A DNA stretch of 64,000 nt from Perkinsela sp. CCAP 1560/9 (GCA_965644495.1 CBFFSA010000002.1:1178001-1242000), one strand, 5' to 3'; shown: positions 5,386-58,499, counted from the first letter of the stretch. Program-made: numbers and translations. Notes: generated by a model not told the origin, from the letters alone.

Positions 5386-6210
5386 CACCCTGTCCAGCTT
5401 CATTTACCTCCCCCCTACAGGTCTTGTATTTTGTTCGATTTTGGAAATATTTGGTATGGGACTGTTTTTCGACCCAATCGTCTCGAATCCGCTGTCCTTT
5501 TCACTCGAGCGACCTTTTTCTTCCGAGACCTTAAAAGTTTCGTCGAAAATCCCGTTTTTCTTTTGCCCACCCAAAAAAAATCCATTTTTTTTACATTTGT
5601 CCTTAATGATCAAGAGATATCGAACTTCCTCTCCCAAATCAGCGCATTCCACCGGAAAGGCGAACACTGATCATAGCACGGTACAAGGAACCAAAATCCT
5701 TACGTGCTGTAGCTAATGAGCTAAAAATCTCCAGGAATGGAGTAAGATATTGGGTGCGGCACTTTGAAAAGCACCAACACGTTACCACCCCACTTCGCGA
5801 AAAACGTCGTACGGTAGTTCCCAAGCGCTACCGTCGTACGTGTGTCAAGGTGTGCCGCCAATTAAAGAAGCAAAACCCCGAAGGAACGACCATTAGCCAC
5901 GTTGCACGCGTGGTTACTAGTTCTCATGGTGGTTCGCGCCAAAGCGTTACCCGAGCCTTAGATTTACAAGGCTACGGGAAAATTCGCAAAGAGCGTGATG
6001 TCGGGCTTACCCCTACGCACGTGAAGAAACGGCTTATTTTTGCGTGTAAACTTATTAAATGGAGTGATGCGAAGTTAGCGCGTATTGTATTCACGGACGA
6101 AAAGCTGTTTACTTGTTCCCTCGGTTCCCGCGAAAACCATTATGTTGATAAAAGGGGGGCGAAAAAATTAAGGCAGTCTCCCAGACAAAAAAGTTTTTTG
6201 GGGGGAAAGG
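5386..6210 (+). mobile_element. Truncated Tc1/mariner transposon (left end and 5' part of transposase)
   Basis: LTPTHVKKRLIFACKLIKWSDAKLARIVFTDEKLF is the Tc1 pattern up to the first catalytic Asp. 5406-5508 matches the TIR region of the MITE at 40982-41372. Confidence 0.8.
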
Positions 6211-17060: not shown

Positions 17061-19424
17061 CAGTGCTCGCAAAAATTAGTAAAACTTTTATTGTAAGATA
17101 GCAAAAAAGTTTTACTAATTAAAAATTCACTAATTTTTGCGCTGCCCCCAAAAAATTTGCCAACTTGATAAAATGTCTTAAATACAAGAGAGCGATGTTT
17201 CGCGTTCGAGGAGCGAAGAAAGCCTTTTAAAAATAGGAATATAACGAACAAGAAAGTCAGAGATTCAGAAAAAAATCAGGAGCGGGGAAAGTAATATGTG
17301 TCTGTAGCACAGAGTAAAAAACACCCAGAAAAAATAATATTAATAAAAATCTTGCTCATAGAAATATTGCTCACAGAAATCTTGCTCGCTTTCCGTTTCA
17401 CTTTCCCCTTCAAATTCCGAACTGTCTTCATAATCGCTGCTATAGTCAATGTGATTACTGTGCATGCATTTGTATTTATCTGACTGGACCTTTCGAGGAG
17501 TTAAACGAATAGGCGTGCATATAGACGTAGCTTCAGAGAAAAATGTATTTTCTGCACTGGCGGATGTCTCAATTTCAGAAGAAGTCTTCCCGAAACCCCA
17601 TAGATCTAGTTTTGCACACTTCTTTTGAGAAAAGAATAACTTCTTCTGAGCTCGACTCATGCCTTTTGTCTGTTCTTTCAGTTTGTATCCTTCCTCACGA
17701 GCTTAATTCTTTTTTTCCTTCTCAATTCTATTTGACTCAAGCCGTTCAGAAAGGCTGGGGTTGGGAGGACGACCTCGTTTCTTGCTTTGAAGAGAGACAA
17801 TATGCTGAATATTTTCCTGTCGAATATCTTGGTCTTCGGGGGGTTCGATTTCATCAACGTTAACATTTACGTGCATTTCTTGTAGCTCATCTCCATGTCT
17901 GCTGACTGTTTCACGTTCGCTGTCGGTGAGCAAGGATGCGTACGCGTCGGCTCGTGTCGGAGTACACCTCTCAGTTTCATCAAAAAGAGCGGCAGTTATA
18001 CCCGTAACTTTCCAAGAAGCAATGACTTGAGCACGAGTAATTTCTCGCATAGCTTTGGTAATTAGCGTGACTTTTTGCGTTCGGAGATGTGAAGCGGAAG
18101 ACATAACCATTTCATGGACGGCATCTTCGACATTTTGACGGGCAAAAATGCGAGCAACATAACCATTGAAAAGTGCTCGAGCCTTGACTTTCAACCCAGA
18201 TATCACAAACTGATCCGCCGGCTGAAAAACGTGAGTCATTTTAGGCGGAATTTCTACACACTGGCAGCTTTTGGAGGAAAGCGCCGTGGCAGAGTCTTTG
18301 TGTTGAGTTGCACCATCTATGATAAAGAGAGCCGGAGTGTTAACGTCTGAAAGTTTGCTCCTCTCCACACCAACAATATCAAGAAATCTTTCTAGAAATT
18401 CGGCCCAAGTGCTTGAATCCTGAAAGTGAGATCCTGTCCGAGCGCACTGTAGAACTCGATCACTGTGTTCAACGTCGACAAACATGCGGGAGGTACCCCG
18501 AAAAATGAATTGTAGAAGATTCAAATCACCAGCAGCATTCGCTAGCACCGTACAAGTGAAACCCCCTTTGCGATTCTGGATTGCAACACTTCTACTTTCT
18601 CCGACGTCAATCCACTTCATTTTCATTCAATCCACTTCATGTTTGAGCCTTCTGGAGAAAGACCAACGAAAAACTCGTCCGCGTTAAAAACAAGCTCTTT
18701 TCGAACACCGAAAGATTTTAGGCCACGTAGATGAGAAAAAAATACATTAGCTGCCTGTGCAACTTCAATAGGTGTCACAGTTCGAGTTGTAGTTGCCCGT
18801 CGCACCTTAATGCCATTGCGGTGCATCCAAGAGTTTGCCCAAGAAATCGAAAACTTCAACGTGCCACCGTTCAGCACTGTGGATCCCGTCTGTCGCTGCT
18901 CTCCGATACCTTTCGTAATGTTGGCTACGCGAGCTGCGTCGACGGCAACGCCAGTTCGTCGAATCAGCAAAAAAGCTTTTAACAACTGAGCTTCTTCGTC
19001 TTCCGTGAGAAGACTCTTTCGACCCCGAGAACCAACGTCATCCAAACGCGCAATGCGCTTGTACTTGGTGATAGCGGCTGAACTGAGACTTCGATGAAAT
19101 TTCAGCTCAAACTTTCGTCGAACATCTTCGCCCCGAAAAACACCACGAGTGTGTTCGAATAACCAATTCTTTTGCTCATCTGCTAAGGAAGTTCCGGAGG
19201 GCGTGTTGCTAGACGAAGCACTTATCAGATTGCTGAGAAATAACATTTCTCCGATGTCGTGCGACATAGTAGTCTGAAAACTTTTCGTAAAAAAAAATAA
19301 ATTCCGAAAAAAATAAAAAAACATTTAAGGTGTAAAACCTGAATTTTGCAAAATGTTTTACTAATTAAAAATTTACTAATTTTTGTTTTACGAATTATTA
19401 TTACACTAATAATTGTGTACACTG
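17061..19424 (-). mobile_element. pogo/Tigger-like DNA transposon with frameshifted transposase
   Basis: CENP-B-type HTH (FSISWANSWMHRNGI) and catalytic motifs VFNADE / FIIDGATQH / THVFQPADQ in ORFs 18623-19324 and 17703-18626. TA-flanked degenerate TIRs CAGTGCTCGCAAAAATTAGT vs CAGTGTACACAATTATTAGT (15/20). Confidence 0.88.
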
Positions 19425-50180: not shown

Positions 50181-50698
50181 TAATTATAAAAATTAATGAT
50201 CCCGTATAAATGTCCGCTATTCCAAAAACAGGGCGGCTTTTCACTCGTGGACACCTGTATCATACCTAAACCGAAAAAAAACTGCCAAAAAGTCGTTTTT
50301 TTTCACAGAGTACATTTTTTAATTAAAATTGGTACATTTGTTGGTGATTCGTGACAAAGAAGCACTGCCCCCTCTGCTTACCTTCCTCCCACGCGTGCCC
50401 CGAGATGGGCACGGCACTCGTGATCGATTAAGAGCGACTTAACTCCTATAAGACACTCGCAAAACTTCATAAGCTTAACCCCAGGTCCATCATTGAAACT
50501 TTTCGCTTTTTTTCCTGAAGATTAACCGGAAACGTTTAAGAATACCTTCCGGGACTATAGTAAACGTTTACTTTTGGTCAAGGAGGCTAAAAGGCATATG
50601 ACTTAATACTAGAGATTACTTTGCACTCCTTTTCCACGTCTTCTGACCTATTTTACTATTGTTCTTCATCCGAAACATTCGAAAAAATACACCCAAAA

Positions 50699-50812
50699 AA
50701 GTTATGCTTCACTAGCACCTGCTCAGGGCAGTGAAGCGCACTTCCTGCAACGGGCGGAGGTCGGACGCCTACCCCAGAACTGCAGCGCACGGACGAATGT
50801 TCGAGTAAATTT
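50699..50812. repeat. Inverted terminal repeat (3' end of element)
   Basis: Reverse complement of 57146-57259 with one mismatch. Confidence 0.97.
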
Positions 50813-51393
50813 GTTGAGTAAGTTTGTTTGTTTGTTTGGTACAAGAGCGCCTGCCATCCCCACAAGCAAGCGCCGCAAGTACCAACTCCGGCTCCCGGCT
50901 CAATCCGGGTACGGGGACGCAAAGCTCTCCTGGGGCGCTTCACTGGTGGCAAAGAACACTCTGTAGTATAATATACCTACTATGTGCCAGTCCCACTAGG
51001 AGGGTTCCCATTCAAGCACGTGCACCGCATTTATCATTCACTGCGTCAGAGCTTAAATGGACATTGATGACGTACTGCTTCTCGTACTTTATAAGCCTAA
51101 AATGTATACTTTTATAATTCTATGTAAATTGTATAATAGATTACTATTACGCAGTATCGTGATATCGATCGTAAGTATAGCACACTTAGGAAGAAGGTGG
51201 ACGTAAGAAATGTATACATCTTGAGGTGATGTGTATACACGCATTAGAGTGTATGTCATAAGTGTTTATGAACTGTTTATCACTAATGTAATAATAATAC
51301 ATGTGGATATGAGATAAAGCTTCATATAATAATACATGCGGATATGAGATAAAGCTTCCACTTATGCTTATAATGAGGAGGTATGGATAATTT

Positions 51394-53130
51394 CTACTTG
51401 TTTCTGCTTAGAAATGTTGTTCCATACGATTTATAAATTTGCCACGCCGTTTGAAGCTGTTCCCATGTTCTTGTACGACGAAAATCATACTCGGCGCGGC
51501 TGTACTCTTTTTGTGGGCGGGTCCCAATATCTGCGAGATTCATTTCGCTTGCGATGTCAGCTAAGACAATTCGCCCGTGAAAATATTGATGAACTCGTAT
51601 TATAGAATCCAATGCTTCAATTTTTGAAAATCCTTTGGCGAACGCACGAGACGCGGCCGTGTTATCGCTCGCAATTATTATGTTCGCGAATCCGCTGCGC
51701 ACTGCGATGCTTATCGCTTTGGATATTGCCGTCGCCTCGGCCAATACAATATCTAACTGACACTCTTGCTCTAAGACGTTTTCTTTTATGGGGAATCCGC
51801 CCTTCATAGGCCAAACGGCCCAGCGCGCTGTGGTCGCGTCTACAACGGCGAAGAAGGTTCGCTTATGTTCACACCTGCGATACATGGTGCAGTCTCGGGG
51901 AGTCGAGTTTGCGCGGATGATACGTAGGGCAGTTTTTAATAGGACCTCTCGTTCGCCCTGTTCGAAGATTATCCCATCCCAATTTTCCACTTCGCCTAAA
52001 ACACTTTGACATTTGCTCAATCTTCCTAGTCCTCGTGGTGATATTCCTAGTATAGTAGCTAAATGGCGCAAGTAGCCACAAAGTTGGAATAATATACGGG
52101 GTGTGATGCTTGACAGGTTTCTCGCTACCTTCAACCACTTTTGAGCTGTGGTCTCGTTTGCTGCCCAGGAAACACGGCCACCATTTTGAATAATTTGAAT
52201 ACCACAATAAGAAAATTTGCATGAACTTTTTTCTATCGTCAGATATTTTTCTAAGATATTGAACTTCCGGAAATTGTGCACCAGGTGTTCTCCCCACCGT
52301 TTTACCGTCGTCTCCGAAGCAACAATCATAAATGAGTCGTACATCAGCGCGATAAATCCTCCCTCACGAAGAGGTACGATCCCCGGAGCTTCAGTCATAT
52401 CAAGCATAGATTCAACGCCATTTAGGTCCGTGCTAGCGTGATCTCCGTAAATCAAAACATTCCACATGATGCTTTGCGCTATCCCGCAAGCTAACTTATA
52501 TCCCATTGGGAGAACAGTGGGACGAAGGTGTGTCGATCCCTGTCGAATGCAGCAGGCGTTCCCTAGTTCCGTTGAAATAGGGATCTGGTAGTACCAGTTC
52601 TTAATATCCCCGTGAAGGAAACGGAACCACCTTTCAGCGCAATCCCCAAGATGCAATAAGGATTGAATGAGCTGTTCCGTACTAGGAATAATAAAGGGGA
52701 TTCCTTCAATACATGTATGAAGGTTAGTGTAACGCAAATCAAATATAGCCCGTGCATGCACATCATCTTTCAGAACCGCCATGTACTTTCCAACTCCCGT
52801 AACTTGCTCCCGAGTCACGGGGACCAATACGTTGCAGTCCTTGAGCGCCTGCAGATGAGACCTGTAGTGTTGGGAGTCCGGATCATCTTTTTCTATGATC
52901 ATTTCTTGGGATGGGAAGGGGGACATTCCCAAGAGCGTTTTGGCATTATGTCCAAATTTAGTTTGGAACATATCGTCTGTCATAATCATGCCACCAATAT
53001 TTTTCAGGGGGCAGAGGGGGTCGCTGTCCTTAGCGTACGCTCCACGTATGGGAGCGTAGTTTTGCTGTAGGCTGAAATATCCGTTGTCCGATTCATGCTC
53101 AAGGTTTTTGAAACTCATCATAATATACAA
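51394..53130 (-). CDS. Reverse transcriptase-RNase H of the YR retroelement
   Basis: RAIFDLRYTN, HGDIKNWYYQIPI, VLPMG, MYDS at the YxDD position; RNase H VDAT / LAEA / SDN / NLADIGTR. Confidence 0.92.
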   Translation of the reverse strand: MYIMMSFKNLEHESDNGYFSLQQNYAPIRGAYAKDSDPLCPLKNIGGMIMTDDMFQTKFGHNAKTLLGMSPFPSQEMIIEKDDPDSQHYRSHLQALKDCNVLVPVTREQVTGVGKYMAVLKDDVHARAIFDLRYTNLHTCIEGIPFIIPSTEQLIQSLLHLGDCAERWFRFLHGDIKNWYYQIPISTELGNACCIRQGSTHLRPTVLPMGYKLACGIAQSIMWNVLIYGDHASTDLNGVESMLDMTEAPGIVPLREGGFIALMYDSFMIVASETTVKRWGEHLVHNFRKFNILEKYLTIEKSSCKFSYCGIQIIQNGGRVSWAANETTAQKWLKVARNLSSITPRILFQLCGYLRHLATILGISPRGLGRLSKCQSVLGEVENWDGIIFEQGEREVLLKTALRIIRANSTPRDCTMYRRCEHKRTFFAVVDATTARWAVWPMKGGFPIKENVLEQECQLDIVLAEATAISKAISIAVRSGFANIIIASDNTAASRAFAKGFSKIEALDSIIRVHQYFHGRIVLADIASEMNLADIGTRPQKEYSRAEYDFRRTRTWEQLQTAWQIYKSYGTTFLSRNK

Positions 53131-53395
53131 AACAGAAGAATATAAGAAACCGTTTTACGAGGAACAAATGTGGCATATTATTATGTTCCTGACATTACTG
53201 AATGACGAAACGGTACACTGTACATACATCGCAATGGTATGATAGTACACGCCTGTATATAGTGTGAAAGGAAATTGACATTGGATGAATAGTGTGTATG
53301 TGAAATGACACAAGGTTATATATTAGGCACAACGACCTGACTCACCTGTACACTACGGATAGCCATTGTTTCTCGTACAGAACAGATGGATAAGG

Positions 53396-54262
53396 CTATA
53401 TCATAGAATAAGCTTCTGCACTGAAGGATGGCATCCATCGGCCACGTAAAAGTCGCGTGGGGAGATCAACACCTTGGCGAGTCAGATGGCCAGCACCGCC
53501 ATGACGAAGACAGTGGAATGACCAGTTCTGTTGCCTATTCCACTCAAAGTGCACGGCTGATGCACGAATCAACGCGTTGGCCTTTACTTTGTTCCAGAAG
53601 GGTAGCAGAAGAACGGTGTTCCCGTCTTTTTTGAGGCAGGTCACTAGTTCCTGAACTTCCGGTACCTGGACGATGTCCACCTCATAGTGGAGACGACCTT
53701 TCCCACCGCGAATGTGAAGTGTCGCAGTTTCTCCTTCAACGTCGTTTCTGCGGAGCAACTCCAGTTCACTATGCCGTAGGAGGCAATAATAAGTTATGGC
53801 AAAGCCTCGAGCATATTCTGTTTCCCCGGCTTCCTGGCAGTATTCGGTCAGCTGCTTTAATTGATTAAAGGTGATTGAACCCCTGGGTTGTGGATCCAGG
53901 CACAAACGGGTGGCTCCTTTGAACCGCCGGCGAAAACGGATCGTTTGAGACCAGCATCGCTCTACGGGTTCATCTTCAAGCTGCCGCCACACTAGGGCGG
54001 AGCGTAGAGCCTCGAGCTTTGAGGCCCGATAAAACCTTGAGAGGCATGCGCAAAGAGCCAAGAACGCTTCTTCGGTTATGTTACACACACCGTGCACCCC
54101 CAAGAGATGCTCAATTCTTGAAAAGTCAAGAGAACGTCTTCGAGCAGTTTCTGGGGCGACAGCAAATTGAGAGAGCTGTGAATGCATATTAGCTTGAATC
54201 AGTCTTTGTGTATCAGCCTGTATAGCTTCATCACTTATACGGCGTCGTCTGGACCAGGCCAT
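53396..54262 (-). CDS. Tyrosine recombinase
   Basis: Full catalytic set: LLRHSEL (R), GGKG (K), FHCLRHGGA (HxxR), GRW (W), EAY (Y). Confidence 0.95.
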   Translation of the reverse strand: MAWSRRRRISDEAIQADTQRLIQANMHSQLSQFAVAPETARRRSLDFSRIEHLLGVHGVCNITEEAFLALCACLSRFYRASKLEALRSALVWRQLEDEPVERCWSQTIRFRRRFKGATRLCLDPQPRGSITFNQLKQLTEYCQEAGETEYARGFAITYYCLLRHSELELLRRNDVEGETATLHIRGGKGRLHYEVDIVQVPEVQELVTCLKKDGNTVLLLPFWNKVKANALIRASAVHFEWNRQQNWSFHCLRHGGAGHLTRQGVDLPTRLLRGRWMPSFSAEAYSMI

Positions 54263-54860
54263 AGTAATTATATTGTATATTCAAGAGAATGCATTAAAGT
54301 TTCTGCAACTGTTCTTTTATTTTGAACTAATTTTGGAGCCACACTAGGTCGATATTACTTTCGCGCCTTCGCGTTTTACCTATCCAAGTGGTGATGATTG
54401 GCTATTTTATGTAAGAGACTTTGCAGCTTTGCAAAGCTGTACGTGAACGAAAATATCATATCTACTGTATATAAATGAGAACCTATATTGAGAACTTCTC
54501 GCGTTATATTTGAGTCAAAGGAATTCTAATCAACAATTTTGGTAAAAGGTATTCGTTTTTAATCGTTAAAAACGCCGATATTGTAAAAAACGGATGGTGA
54601 GCCCACGTACTACGTGCGTTTTCTGTATTGTTAAAAACAATTTAAGGCAGGATACTACGCATTAAATAATTCTTTTTAAGAACAGATTTGTTTTTTCTCA
54701 AGCCCAATTATTCTGATCTGGATTTTTACCGTTTCGCAAAATTTTCGAAAGCACATTTTGAAGAGATAAGCAACATAACTATACGTGCCTGTAAACAATG
54801 GCCCCTACGTGTCTGTATCGATCGGTTAAAATGATTATATTAACTTTTTGCAACTCTGGG

Positions 54861-55996
54861 CTACTGCTTCCGAAACTTGTTGTTCTGAACCACTGGGCCA
54901 GAACGACTACGCTTGTAGGCGCTGTCTTGCCCGTGCAAGAAGTCGCTTGGTACGATCTTTACCGTGCAATCGCGGATTTCATGGCCTCTTTTTCCGCAGT
55001 GACGGCACGTACCGCGTGGAGCGCGTGGATAGTTCCACGCTTTGACGACTGAGGGGGGTTTACCGGGGTTGGTTCGCTTGTAGGCGTTTCGCACCACTGG
55101 GGTTTGAGGGGCCGAAGGGAATGTCCCAGCCGAAACCTTGCACACGGTGGTCACATTGCGGTTTACCATTGCTAACGCACGTTCGTGCCCCGCAAGAATG
55201 GCCACAATGGATTTATTGGTGGTTTCAGTATGGTTGTCGAGCATGAGGTGCTCGAGTGTCTCTACAGACACCGCAGCACCCTCATGCCGTAGGCGGTGCA
55301 TGAGCAACCAGCCCCCATCTTACACAGGAGGGACCAAATGCCGAGTCGCACGCCCTCAGAATTGATGCTTTCTATCGGGGCATCAGGAGGGGAGTCTGCC
55401 AAAAGCTTGGCGTAGTACACCATGTCAGGCCGGTTGTCTACCGACTCCTTCACTGCCTTCTGTACGTGTGGCGAGAGCCACGTTTCTGTACTGAAACCGG
55501 TGTCCGTTAGGCACTGGTGCAGTTGGACACGGCAGCGAGGGTCTTTGCGCGTCCCAATAAGACTACAAAAGGCTTTTCGTAGGTCCTTATTGCTTTGGTC
55601 TCCGCGAGTGGGAGTTTCTGTTTCTGCGACCGGGACAGCTTCAGAGTGTTCCAACTCTGCCTCAAGCGCGCAAAGCGCATCTCGCAAGTTGACGACAACA
55701 GCTTGGGAGACGTTGCCGGATGAAAAATCGCCGCGCACCATCGCAGCAAGAGTCCGTCGAACTATACGTGCTCCATTCACAGTATTTCCCTTTGCCGCCG
55801 TGGCAGCAGCACTCTCAAGGATGGGAGTCATCGACTTCTTTCCTTTCACATACTGAATTGCTTTGGGTAGAATCCCAACTAATTCTTCGCGAACCGTTAC
55901 TCCCAAACGTTTTAGGGAGCAGAGCTCTAGAAAAGCACACTTTGGGCTGTGTGCGGCGTAATTTTCTGGGAGAAGGGAAGGTAAAGCCTCTGGCAT
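54861..55996 (-). CDS. Gag-like protein with CCHC zinc knuckle, split by one frameshift
   Basis: CRHCGKRGHEIRDC in ORF 54861-55307; it joins ORF 55262-56011 if one G is added to the G5 run (C5 at 55312-55316). Confidence 0.8.
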
Positions 55997-56239
55997 GAAA
56001 TGAGTCAGCAAGTAAGAAAGTATTGTGTATACAGAGAGACATCGTTCTCAATATTTTTCCAGTCGAGCACGTCTCCTACTTTCGTTTCAATAACGTGATG
56101 TAACTAGTTGCACTTATTGTGCGCAGATCGATCCCGAAAATTACTGTAAATTCGACAGTCTAAGGCCATTACATAAACTAAAGTATGCTTTCTTTCATAT
56201 CTGTGAACATCTCTAGTTCTATAAGGGCCCACAGGCCTT

Positions 56240-56958
56240 CGCCCCGTGGCGAACTAAATTACTCCTGATTGAGTATTTTCTGTAGTCACGGACTCAACAA
56301 GCCCTGTGGCGAAACTAAATTACTTCTGAATGAGTGTTCTCTATGGAGTCAAGGACTCAACACGCCCTGCGGCGAAAAAGTCAATTTACTCCTGAATGAG
56401 TATTCTCTGTGGGAGAGTCAAGGACTCAACACACCCTGTGGCAAAAAACTAAATTTACTCCTGAATGAGTATTCTCTATAGAGTCAAGGACTCAACACGC
56501 CCTGTGGCGGAACTAAATTTACTCCTGAATGAGTATTCTCTATAGAGTCAAGGACCCAACACGCCCTGTGGCGAAACCAAATTTACTCCTGAATGAGTAT
56601 TCTCTATAGAGTCAAGGACTCAGCACGCCCTGTGGCGGACCTAAATTTACTCCGGATTTAGTATCCTCTATGGGAGAGTCAAGGACTCAACACGCCCTGT
56701 GGCAGAACTAAATTACTCCTGAATGAGTATTCTCTGTGGGAGAGTCAAGGACTCAACACGCCCTGTGGCGAAACTAAATTTACTCCTGAAAGAGTATTCT
56801 CTATAGAGTCAAGGACTCAACACGCCCTGTGGCGGAACTAAATTACTCCTGAATGAGTATTCTCTATAGAGTCAAGGACTCAGCACGCCCTGCGGCGAAA
56901 CTAAATTACTCCTGAATGAGTATTCTCTGTGGGAGAGTCAAGGACTGAACACGCCCTA
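56240..56958. repeat. Tandem array of ~11 multi-hairpin units of ~64 bp
   Basis: Consensus CGCCCTGTGGCGAAACTAAATTTACTCCTGAATGAGTATTCTCTATAGAGTCAAGGACTCAACA. Confidence 0.97.
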
Positions 56959-57145
56959 CGACAAAAAAAACTGAACTGATCTTTGCTCGTTGGTGCTTGT
57001 GGGTGTTGTGAGCGCGTTCCTTCGGTTGGTTGTATGGCACGCTTCATGTATGGTAATAGTGTCTTTACGAAGAAGGAAAAAAATAGAAAAACTGAAGTGT
57101 AAAGGTTATGTAGTGTTAACTCGACCTTTTCGTAGAATAAAAATA

Positions 57146-57259
57146 AAATTTACTCGAACATTCGTCCGTGCGCTGCAGTTCTGGGGTAGGCGTGCGACCT
57201 CCGCCCGTTGCAGGAAGTGCGCTTCACTGCCCTGAGCAGGTGCTAGTGAAGCATAACTT
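57146..57259. repeat. Inverted terminal repeat (5' end of element)
   Basis: Reverse complement of 50699-50812. Confidence 0.97.
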
Positions 57260-57469
57260 CCTATTACATGGCGCGGTCTCCTTTAACCCTGCTGGGACAA
57301 AGCCGATAGTCGGACGCCGACCCCCCCCCCCTCTTCTTTTCCTGCGCTGCAATACTTGGAAACTTCCTTCCATCACCATTTTCACTACTGCGCAACAATC
57401 AGTTAGTGACCCCGGGATTTGGACCGGTACAGCAGGGTTAAAGGAGACCGCGCCATGTAATAGGAAGTT
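57255..57469. mobile_element. MITE-like element with perfect 40-bp inverted repeats
   Basis: AACTTCCTATTACATGGCGCGGTCTCCTTTAACCCTGCTG at 57255-57294 and its reverse complement at 57430-57469. Confidence 0.85.
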
Positions 57470-57519
57470 GTAATTAGCTTTTTTGACCCCTACCTGGCTA
57501 GAGGGGGTAGGGGGTCGCC

Positions 57520-57644
57520 CGAGTGAAAAGGACCTCGGATTCGGAACGATTGGGTCGAAAAACGGTGGTGTACCAAATATTTCCAAAATCGGACAAAATA
57601 CAAGACCTGTAGGGGGGGGGGGTAAAAGACGCTGAACACCACTG
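57520..57644. mobile_element. Solo end of the Tc1-type MITE family
   Basis: Matches 41253-41372 and ends CCACTG-TA. Confidence 0.8.
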
Positions 57645-58499
57645 TAGAGGTAATGTACTATAAACAAAATAAAGTTTGTATTTTCTCACCATCTGCCTCC
57701 AGCATAGAAATCAACCATTTGCGCTTTTCTGTAAGAAATTTCTTCGAAGGGCGTCTATCCACGTTCACAAAATAATCCATCTTAAGTAGAATAAAAGAAA
57801 AAATTCTTTGGTTTAGAAAAAAATTAAGAAATAGCGTTCGATTAATTTCTGATTTATAAAAATAAATGATCCCGCATAAACTAAATTTTTATAACTCGAA
57901 ATCCATTTATATAAATTAATGAGAGAGGGAGTATTATAGTAGCTGTCTACTTGAGAACTCTTTCGCTTCTCGAGACAGTCGAAGCCAAACCCTCCAGGCG
58001 AAAAGGACCGAAACCAGCTCATCTATTGGCCGCAAAATATATAAAAAAAGTTACAAGGTTACAAGATTACAACAAGGGGGTGACGTATTCAATTGAAATG
58101 ATTTTCCTCCCCGATTCCATATTCTGATACTTTATGACCCATGGACTCAACGGGACATTAGTACAAGCTTGAAGCGCAGTACTGTGTAAAATGGGAGCCG
58201 CTGTGTTAAGTTTCCATCTTCTGCAAGAAAGAGCTGCTCTATCAACAGAGTTCTTCGGAGCATTGCACCACCGATCATAAATAATAATAATTCTCTGCAC
58301 CCTTGTTGATGCTGAGAGAGACACCATTCGGGTGACCGGGATTTAAATGGGTACATAAGACGGTGGACAAGGTACTTTATAGTTTATATCTGAACACCGT
58401 AAGACGGATGGGGTACGTCATTAAGTCTTAATGAACATCTTAAGATGATGTCGCCGTGACTTTTGTGCTCATGACTCCAAAATCATTTTTGAAACTCTT

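Follow-up and report, generated by a model that had tools for sequence, protein, structure and literature searches.

Retrotransposons encoding a tyrosine recombinase (YR) fall into four groups, separated largely by their terminal repeats: DIRS-like elements have inverted terminal repeats (ITRs) together with an internal complementary region (ICR), and split direct repeats characterise the PAT-, Ngaro- and VIPER-like ones. Nothing but these repeats hints at how the ends of such elements are rebuilt and how the elements integrate. In DIRS-1 the ICR is 88 nucleotides (nt) long, matches by complementarity 33 nt at the left end and 55 nt at the right, and is needed for retrotransposition; the complementary DNA (cDNA) consists of single strands, for the most part linear ones (Malicki et al. 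2020, PMC7192593). DIRS1-like elements carry the ICR at their 3' end, and their ends show an NTT trinucleotide that is complementary to the 3-bp circular junction, integration occurring at an identical motif with no true duplication (Piednoel et al. 2011, PMC3266345). VIPER and TATE have split direct repeats, with A1 located 5' and B1-A2-B2 located 3' (Ribeiro et al. 2019, PMC6681497), no target duplications, and larger, overlapping open reading frames (ORFs) (PMC6681497, PMC12278014). The element described here lies in a 64,000-nt stretch of DNA from Perkinsela sp. CCAP 1560/9 (GCA_965644495.1 CBFFSA010000002.1:1178001-1242000), referred to below as the window, and other copies of it were searched for in the same 21-Mb genome. 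Positions 50699-57469 of the window, read on the minus strand, probably represent one recent insertion of a YR retrotransposon that carries an ICR-type template of its circle junction and uses a DIRS-1-like mechanism.

The limits of the element are given by the host sequence that it interrupts, a dispersed repeat present in at least 40 copies of 86-97% identity. Each of the two flanks (50470-50698 and 57470-57646) matches at least 40 places in the genome, and in at least eight paralogous copies of the repeat both flank matches sit exactly 5 nt apart. The empty sites (n=8) read cccaaaa[NNNNN]gtaattagc, where the 5-mer is AAGTT in five cases, AAATT in two and AAGCT in one, while the filled site in the window reads ...cccaaaa AAGTT ATGCTTC ... 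TAATAGG AAGTT gtaattagc..., with two copies of AAGTT around the insertion against the single 5-mer of each empty site. Because the flanks are contiguous in the empty sites save for these 5 nt, 50699-57469 is a single insertion, and comparison of filled and empty sites gives an inserted length of 6766 bp plus the second AAGTT. An initial annotation of this DNA had described a near-intact element bounded by 114-nt ITRs at 50699-57259, and had found no target-site duplication by eye. The element is indeed near-intact, but it does not end at those repeats: its true end is at 57469, which makes it 210 bases longer, homology to other genome copies continues past 57259 up to this point, and the repeat copy at 57146-57259 is consequently internal (sub-terminal) rather than terminal. 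A target-site-like 5-bp direct repeat, AAGTT, does flank the element.

In the sense orientation the element is organized as A - loop - A' overlapping B - tandem array - gag(CCHC) - YR - reverse transcriptase (RT)/RNase H - 3' untranslated region (UTR) with (CAAA)4 - B' (Table 1). The overlap of A' and B is the 5-mer AAGTT (sense, 57255-57259). Over its full 149 nt, the segment A'B (57146-57294) is the reverse complement of B' joined to A via a shared AACTT, with a single mismatch. It is thus an ICR-type complement of the joined ends, in a place where the initial annotation had found no ICR. The element both starts and ends with AACTT (sense), which contains CTT. Terminus A and terminus B' are not mutually complementary, having in common only this core and a 7-nt ACTTCCT/AGGAAGT motif, so the element has no ITRs in the proper sense. 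The 114-nt inverted repeat with one mismatch that had been reported is real, and pairs the right terminus with half of the internal copy. A different circularisation route, which had been suggested for an ITR-bounded element with neither ICR nor target duplication, is not needed: the supposed left ITR and the adjoining 40-nt arm together repeat the circle junction in inverted orientation, the device of DIRS1 (PMC3266345, PMC7192593).

The two copies of the left arm form a perfect 40-nt inverted repeat (57255-57294 and 57430-57469) within a hairpin of 215 nt (57255-57469), and the fold of the 5' 330 nt contains this 40-bp stem (z = -8.6). A second hairpin, at 57205-57252, lies about 7 nt inside B from the crossover core. 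The 5' part of the loop, ACCGGTCCAAAxCCCGGGG, is kept across subfamilies. The internal tandem array was the sole direct repeat detected in the element and its flanks, and an Rfam search of the window gave no match. The near-perfect identity of both pairs (40/40 for A/A' and 113/114 for B/B') means either that the insertion is recent, as had been suggested initially from the repeats, or that the pairs have been homogenised. The motif ACTTCCT recurs where A begins and again about 40 nt inside B.

Table 1. Features of the element and of the host repeat at its insertion site (window coordinates).
Feature	Position	Strand	Remarks
Whole element	50699..57469	minus	6771 nt counting AAGTT at both ends
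A, left (5') terminus	57430..57469	minus	40 nt; sense start AACTTCCTATTAC...; perfect complement of 57255-57294
Loop between A and A'	57295..57429	minus	135 nt
A', left half of internal junction copy (lICR equivalent)	57255..57294	minus	40/40 complementary to A
B, right half of internal junction copy (rICR equivalent)	57146..57259	minus	113/114 complementary to 50699-50812
Tandem array between junction copy and gag	56250..56977	minus	about 11 units of 63-69 nt
gag, N-terminal part, frame 1	55262..56011	minus	249-amino-acid (aa) ORF; no Pfam match
gag, C-terminal part, other frame	54861..55307	minus	148-aa ORF; frames meet at about 55308
Tyrosine recombinase	53396..54262	minus	288 aa; Pfam Phage_integrase 5e-9
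RT/RNase H	51394..53130	minus	578 aa; motif A D175; motif C Y264-D265-S266
(CAAA)4 run, end of 3' UTR just before B'	50823..50838	minus	kept in other copies
B', right (3') terminus	50699..50812	minus	114 nt; sense end ...GTGAAGCATAACTT
Target host repeat, left half	50470..50698		matches to paralogous repeat copies
Target host repeat, right half	57470..57646		matches to paralogous repeat copies

The internal junction copy is not peculiar to the window. The layout was compared in five other copies (C29, C1b, C1a, C2:787738, which is also seen as L041, and C1:237551), with RT identity down to 48-60%. All five begin with a homologous A terminus and show the order A-loop-A'-B, across about four subfamilies. 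L041 is the same locus as G000:C2:787738 in another assembly and does not count as an independent copy. Within a copy, A and the reverse complement of A' are 94-100% identical, and between subfamilies A is only about 70-84% identical, the variable centre of A/A' co-varying between subfamilies. The right arm shows the same pattern, with 62-85% identity of B between subfamilies and 112-113/114 for B/B' within a copy (two copies having both). In the C29 and C1b copies the common sequence begins exactly at A, not at B. Tandem arrays are present at the equivalent position in C29/C1b and L041, and four subfamilies (represented by the window copy, C29, C1a and L041) retain the B hairpin, about 7 nt away from the core, with stems that differ in sequence. 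In 6/6 copies for which both are known, A-loop-A' sits on the gag side, upstream of the RT gene.

The ends of these copies point to the same motif. In the other copies, the flanking 5-mers equal the centre of the copy's own ICR at 4-5 of the 5 positions and differ mostly at the first base, giving a shared core of (N)ACTT, and this core is found at the termini of all copies compared. Full B' termini followed by unrelated flanks occur in the C29, C7, C3, C82 and C6 copies. At least 74 RT matches are present in the genome, including five near-full-length frames without stops. The window copy is the only near-complete member of its own subfamily, the C7 copy being interrupted and the C3 copy a fragment. 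The 3' UTR of both the C7 copy (G000:C7:782489-785328) and the C3 copy (G000:C3:1262912-1265640) holds an insertion of about 2.8 kb, not at the same position in the two.

Coding capacity is found wholly on the minus strand, as three co-oriented genes in the order gag - YR - RT/RNase H whose ORFs do not overlap between genes; on this point the initial annotation was correct. The C-terminal ORF of gag contains a CCHC knuckle (CX2CX4HX4C, 54966-55007, CRHCGKRGHEIRDC). At position 55308, where the two gag frames meet, other copies are longer by 1 base, namely the C7 copy and most contigs from two other sequencing runs, and in L041 gag is a single 378-aa ORF with CCHC. The window copy is near-intact rather than intact, gag being split in two frames. 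The recombinase has the complete R-K-H-R-W-Y catalytic set that had been noted earlier (R163, K188, H250, R253, W276 and Y285), and its family profile, from an alignment with eight relatives, matches XerC-like, XerA, IntI4, Cre and XerD chains (E 4e-6 to 1e-4). No methyltransferase ORF or domain was found in the element by ORF and Pfam scans, in agreement with the initial annotation.

The 578-aa ORF has no match to Pfam RVT_1 and only a weak one to RVT_3. Searched alone by sequence against Pfam and PDB, it gave nothing usable, and its identification needed a family profile and a fold search. Its relatives are 25-49% identical. Among eight aligned relatives the Asp of motif A is invariant (D175, LHGDIKNWYYQI), motif B is VLPMGY, and motif C (residues 263-267) is YDS or YDT, not YxDD, in 8/8 family members, including those of 25% identity. 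Since every aligned member has a motif C without the second Asp, this is a trait of the lineage and not decay of the window copy. The RNase H residues are D431, E465, D489 and D534, the last within an [AG]D motif. The RT family profile aligns motifs A and B with those of HIV-1 RT (E 0.0096). An AlphaFold2 model of the protein has a mean predicted local distance difference test score (pLDDT) of 86.1 and a predicted template modelling score (pTM) of 0.81, and its best Foldseek matches are the RTs of MMLV, XMRV, CaMV, foamy virus, HERV-K, HIV-1 and Ty3 (E 8e-15 to 1e-12). As judged from the predicted structure, the ORF is an RT/RNase H, with the fold confirmed. In the ESM Atlas the nearest clusters, after the family's own Euglenozoa-labelled ones, come from nematodes, arthropods and cnidarians and combine RVT_1 + RT_RNaseH (+ Dam); they look like DIRS/PAT-type polymerases.

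Several other readings of the locus were weighed. The anatomy could be accepted as described, with the AAGTT pair being an ordinary 5-bp target-site duplication and the inverted repeats serving as a promoter, a packaging signal or a Tf1-like self-priming hairpin. Two copies of AAGTT in the filled site against one in the empty site are what a staggered cut, too, would yield, A/A' looks like a 5' self-priming stem, and no circle was observed in the run contigs. The 5-mer flanking the window copy is, however, the centre of its own internal junction copy, and the other copies fit their own ICR centres at 4-5 of 5 positions, which arbitrary duplications would not do. Tyrosine recombinases are not known to make staggered-cut duplications, and overall this reading appears improbable. 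Far less room is left for the hairpin at 57255-57469 being an independent foldback or miniature inverted-repeat transposable element beside a separate, ITR-bounded retroelement. Small palindromic repeats are abundant in the genome, and A-loop-A' units without an RT do occur (see below), but the host repeat is split by hairpin and retroelement together, in a single 6766-bp insertion, the core 5-mer is common to the hairpin and B, and the hairpin takes the same place in five other copies from several subfamilies, each time with subfamily-specific sequence. We regard this explanation as very unlikely.

The model of the initial annotation, an element bounded by 114-nt ITRs (50699-57259) with no ICR, no duplication and a novel circularisation route, has in its favour that the 114-nt inverted repeat exists. 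Against it, the empty sites put the end at 57469, the common sequence of the C29 and C1b copies begins at A, and the ICR relation is exact, so that hardly any probability can be given to it. The same is true of an ordinary VIPER/TATE member with split direct repeats and with ends that were misread or misassembled. Its gene order (gag-YR-RT/RH, RH denoting RNase H) and a probable euglenozoan host would both suit the locus, but direct repeats are absent from element and flanks except for the tandem array, the same inverted layout recurs in several contigs as well as in L041 from a second assembly, the ORFs show no overlap, and an RT/RNase H of 578 aa compares with published lengths of 852-948 aa. 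It too is scarcely credible.

From the anatomy, and by analogy with DIRS-1, we infer a mechanism in which A'B acts as an internal template or splint for the circle junction, as in the DIRS-1 model. After reverse transcription A'B would restore the termini and juxtapose them. Strand exchange by the element's recombinase would follow, with the junction core (N)ACTT and a matching target of 4-5 nt as partners, leaving one copy of the core on each side and making no true target-site duplication. The near-perfect identity of A/A' and of B/B' would be expected under this proposal because both pairs would be templated in every cycle.

A number of observations weigh against such a retrotransposon with a junction template. 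Its right end is not uniform among copies. The initial annotation had raised the matter of copies that lack the inverted repeats, and the outcome is mixed: the right repeat B' is present in six copies, three end exactly at the (CAAA)n of the 3' UTR without B', and one further copy keeps only the first ~47 nt of B'. The copies without a full B' are L051/C1b (G000:C1 ~2550387), L041 ~8130 (G000:C2:787738), L018 (G000:C13) and L008 (G000:C1:1869195). The gag of the window copy is in two frames. The second Asp of motif C is missing family-wide, and polymerase activity is assumed. Transcripts, cDNA and circles were not seen directly: four DNA-like sequencing runs of one study contain the element and one possible RNA run contains none, and the run contigs show no joints and no molecule ends, speaking neither for nor against expression or circles. 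Over 149 nt the junction B'A and the reverse-complemented ICR (A'B) are identical, so that short reads or de Bruijn contigs do not separate the two. Finally, a double-stranded circle would hold one and the same site twice, in opposite orientations, as junction and as ICR, but only one isomer is found (6/6 copies). The simple double-stranded-circle model leaves this one-sided isomer unexplained.

Compared with the described systems, the element resembles DIRS1 in its ends. Both have an internal segment of two abutting parts, each complementary to one terminus and overlapping on a short junction motif, and both have the same NTT-type motif at the two ends (here CTT within AACTT), which is present once in the empty target. 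Both encode gag, RT/RNase H and YR, and the nearest named RT clusters by structure are the RVT_1 + RT_RNaseH + Dam type. Unlike those of DIRS1, however, the termini are not inverted repeats, there being only extensions (a left one, lE, of 40 nt and a right one, rE, of 114 nt), the ICR is set 135 nt in from the 5' end and not close to the 3' end, and the junction overlap is 4-5 nt rather than 3. The genes differ as well: they are separate, non-overlapping ORFs in the order gag-YR-RT/RH, with YR upstream of RT/RH, no methyltransferase is encoded, and motif C of the RT is YDS/T. In DIRS1-like elements a methyltransferase domain follows RT/RH, and YR is placed downstream of pol or overlaps it.

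In its gene content the element resembles VIPER and TATE, which share a gag-like gene (with CCHC in some), followed by YR and RT/RH, the absence of a methyltransferase, a probable euglenozoan host and an RT so divergent that domain models barely find it. It is set apart from their published descriptions by having an inverted junction copy in place of split direct repeats, and by shorter, non-overlapping ORFs (RT/RH of 578 aa vs about 850-950 aa). Neither inverted repeats nor an ICR are mentioned for VIPER/TATE in PMC6681497, its supplement or PMC12278014. The hybrid character proposed initially, VIPER/TATE gene order with DIRS-like inverted-repeat logic, therefore holds in outline, though not in the ITR-bounded form. 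Ngaro and PAT are likewise YR retrotransposons that keep an internal copy of the circle junction, but theirs is direct (split direct repeats at the 3' end) and their YR follows RT/RH, neither of which is seen here; PAT in addition has a methyltransferase. Cryptons have a YR only, with no RT and no gag, whereas here RT/RNase H and a CCHC gag belong to the same single insertion. A literature search that did not include Repbase found no published description of this layout.

Formation of a duplex recombination site by intramolecular pairing within one DNA strand is known from attP(+) of the CTX phage and from attC of integrons, both substrates of bacterial tyrosine recombinases. A similar situation could be imagined for the present element, in which the two termini of a single-stranded cDNA would anneal side by side on A'B and so create the only duplex recombination site. 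If the duplex site forms only in this way, the single integration isomer would be explained, and if B' is added after copying of an RNA that ends at (CAAA)n, so would the copies without B'. The likeness to attP(+) and attC is a mechanistic analogy, with no descent claimed, and for the present element a single-stranded intermediate was not observed. On this basis a fifth structural class of YR retroelements may be put forward, with VIPER-type gene order, a 5'-proximal inverted junction copy, no ITRs, and integration from folded single-stranded cDNA. We offer it tentatively, as a possibility that is rather unlikely.

Some further copies and derivatives are present in the genome. The B'-less G000:C2 copy is flanked by a 69-nt direct repeat (96%; L041 1538-1606 and 8157-8225) of a palindromic host repeat, and the same palindromic repeat flanks the C1a copy, so that a long duplication or a preferred landing site is possible. 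Hairpin units of the type A-loop-A' with no RT match nearby occur at G000:C10:492997-493194 and G000:C19:38028-38258. Such solo hairpins may be non-autonomous derivatives, as SIRE is for VIPER. Matches with a spacing of 6.5 kb at G000:C9:231500-247500 (L066, L067) were considered as head-to-tail elements and rejected; they represent a 6531-bp tandem repeat with 99.9% identity, which contains a degenerate 45-nt relic of the element's 5' terminus and no ORF longer than 173 aa. Elsewhere in the window, a 307-aa minus-strand ORF (17703-18626) has a DDE_1 (pogo-like) transposase domain (E 5e-7).

A search with the RT profile against 1.84 billion representatives retrieved 1949 proteins at E <= 0.001 and 267 at E <= 1e-30, mostly of about 600 aa, unnamed, and from short metagenomic contigs. 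In the ESM Atlas the neighbours carry the label Eukaryota, and most frequently Euglenozoa. This is a large, unnamed family with few taxon-labelled relatives, mostly Euglenozoa. Gene orders vary among the distant metagenomic relatives. Two of them show repeats of the same kind. In L054 an inverted repeat of 245 nt, with a loop of 176 nt, precedes gag, and L040 carries a B/B' pair of 55 nt, one arm upstream of gag and the other downstream of RT. A 54-nt terminal overlap of L054 had suggested a circle, but it stems from the contig's own inverted repeats and is not counted as a physical junction. A further distant relative, L057 (assembly GCA_013565675.1), has the order YR - RT (736 aa) - 530-aa ORF on a 5879-nt contig with a perfect 127-nt terminal overlap (1-127, 5753-5879), which makes the unit a circular or tandem one, and it yielded no inverted repeats.

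The host of the element is probably a euglenozoan. The ORFs of the window are long, intronless and co-oriented on one strand, and a spliced-leader-like motif (a kinetoplastid-type 3' motif) has five dispersed matches in the genome against none for the reversed control. These are located at G000:C3:214246, C5:790775, C9:532533, C12:255060 and C21:14576, with the sequence CAGTTTCTGTACTTTGTTG, and at C9 CAGTTTCTGTACCTTATTG.

The precise empty sites make this an unusually clean case of a YR retroelement inserted at its own junction motif. Overall, the pairing of a gene order of VIPER type with an inverted junction copy as in DIRS, placed at the other end from there, in an element without ITRs, indicates that these traits are separable and that an ICR needs no ITRs. 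The one-sided isomer and the copies without B' are concrete handles on the DNA substrate of the recombinase. As the family is unannotated in public protein collections, current classifications of YR retrotransposons probably miss it, and if the folded-cDNA class is real, it would be widespread in uncultured protists, given the number of representative RTs (1949 at E <= 0.001).

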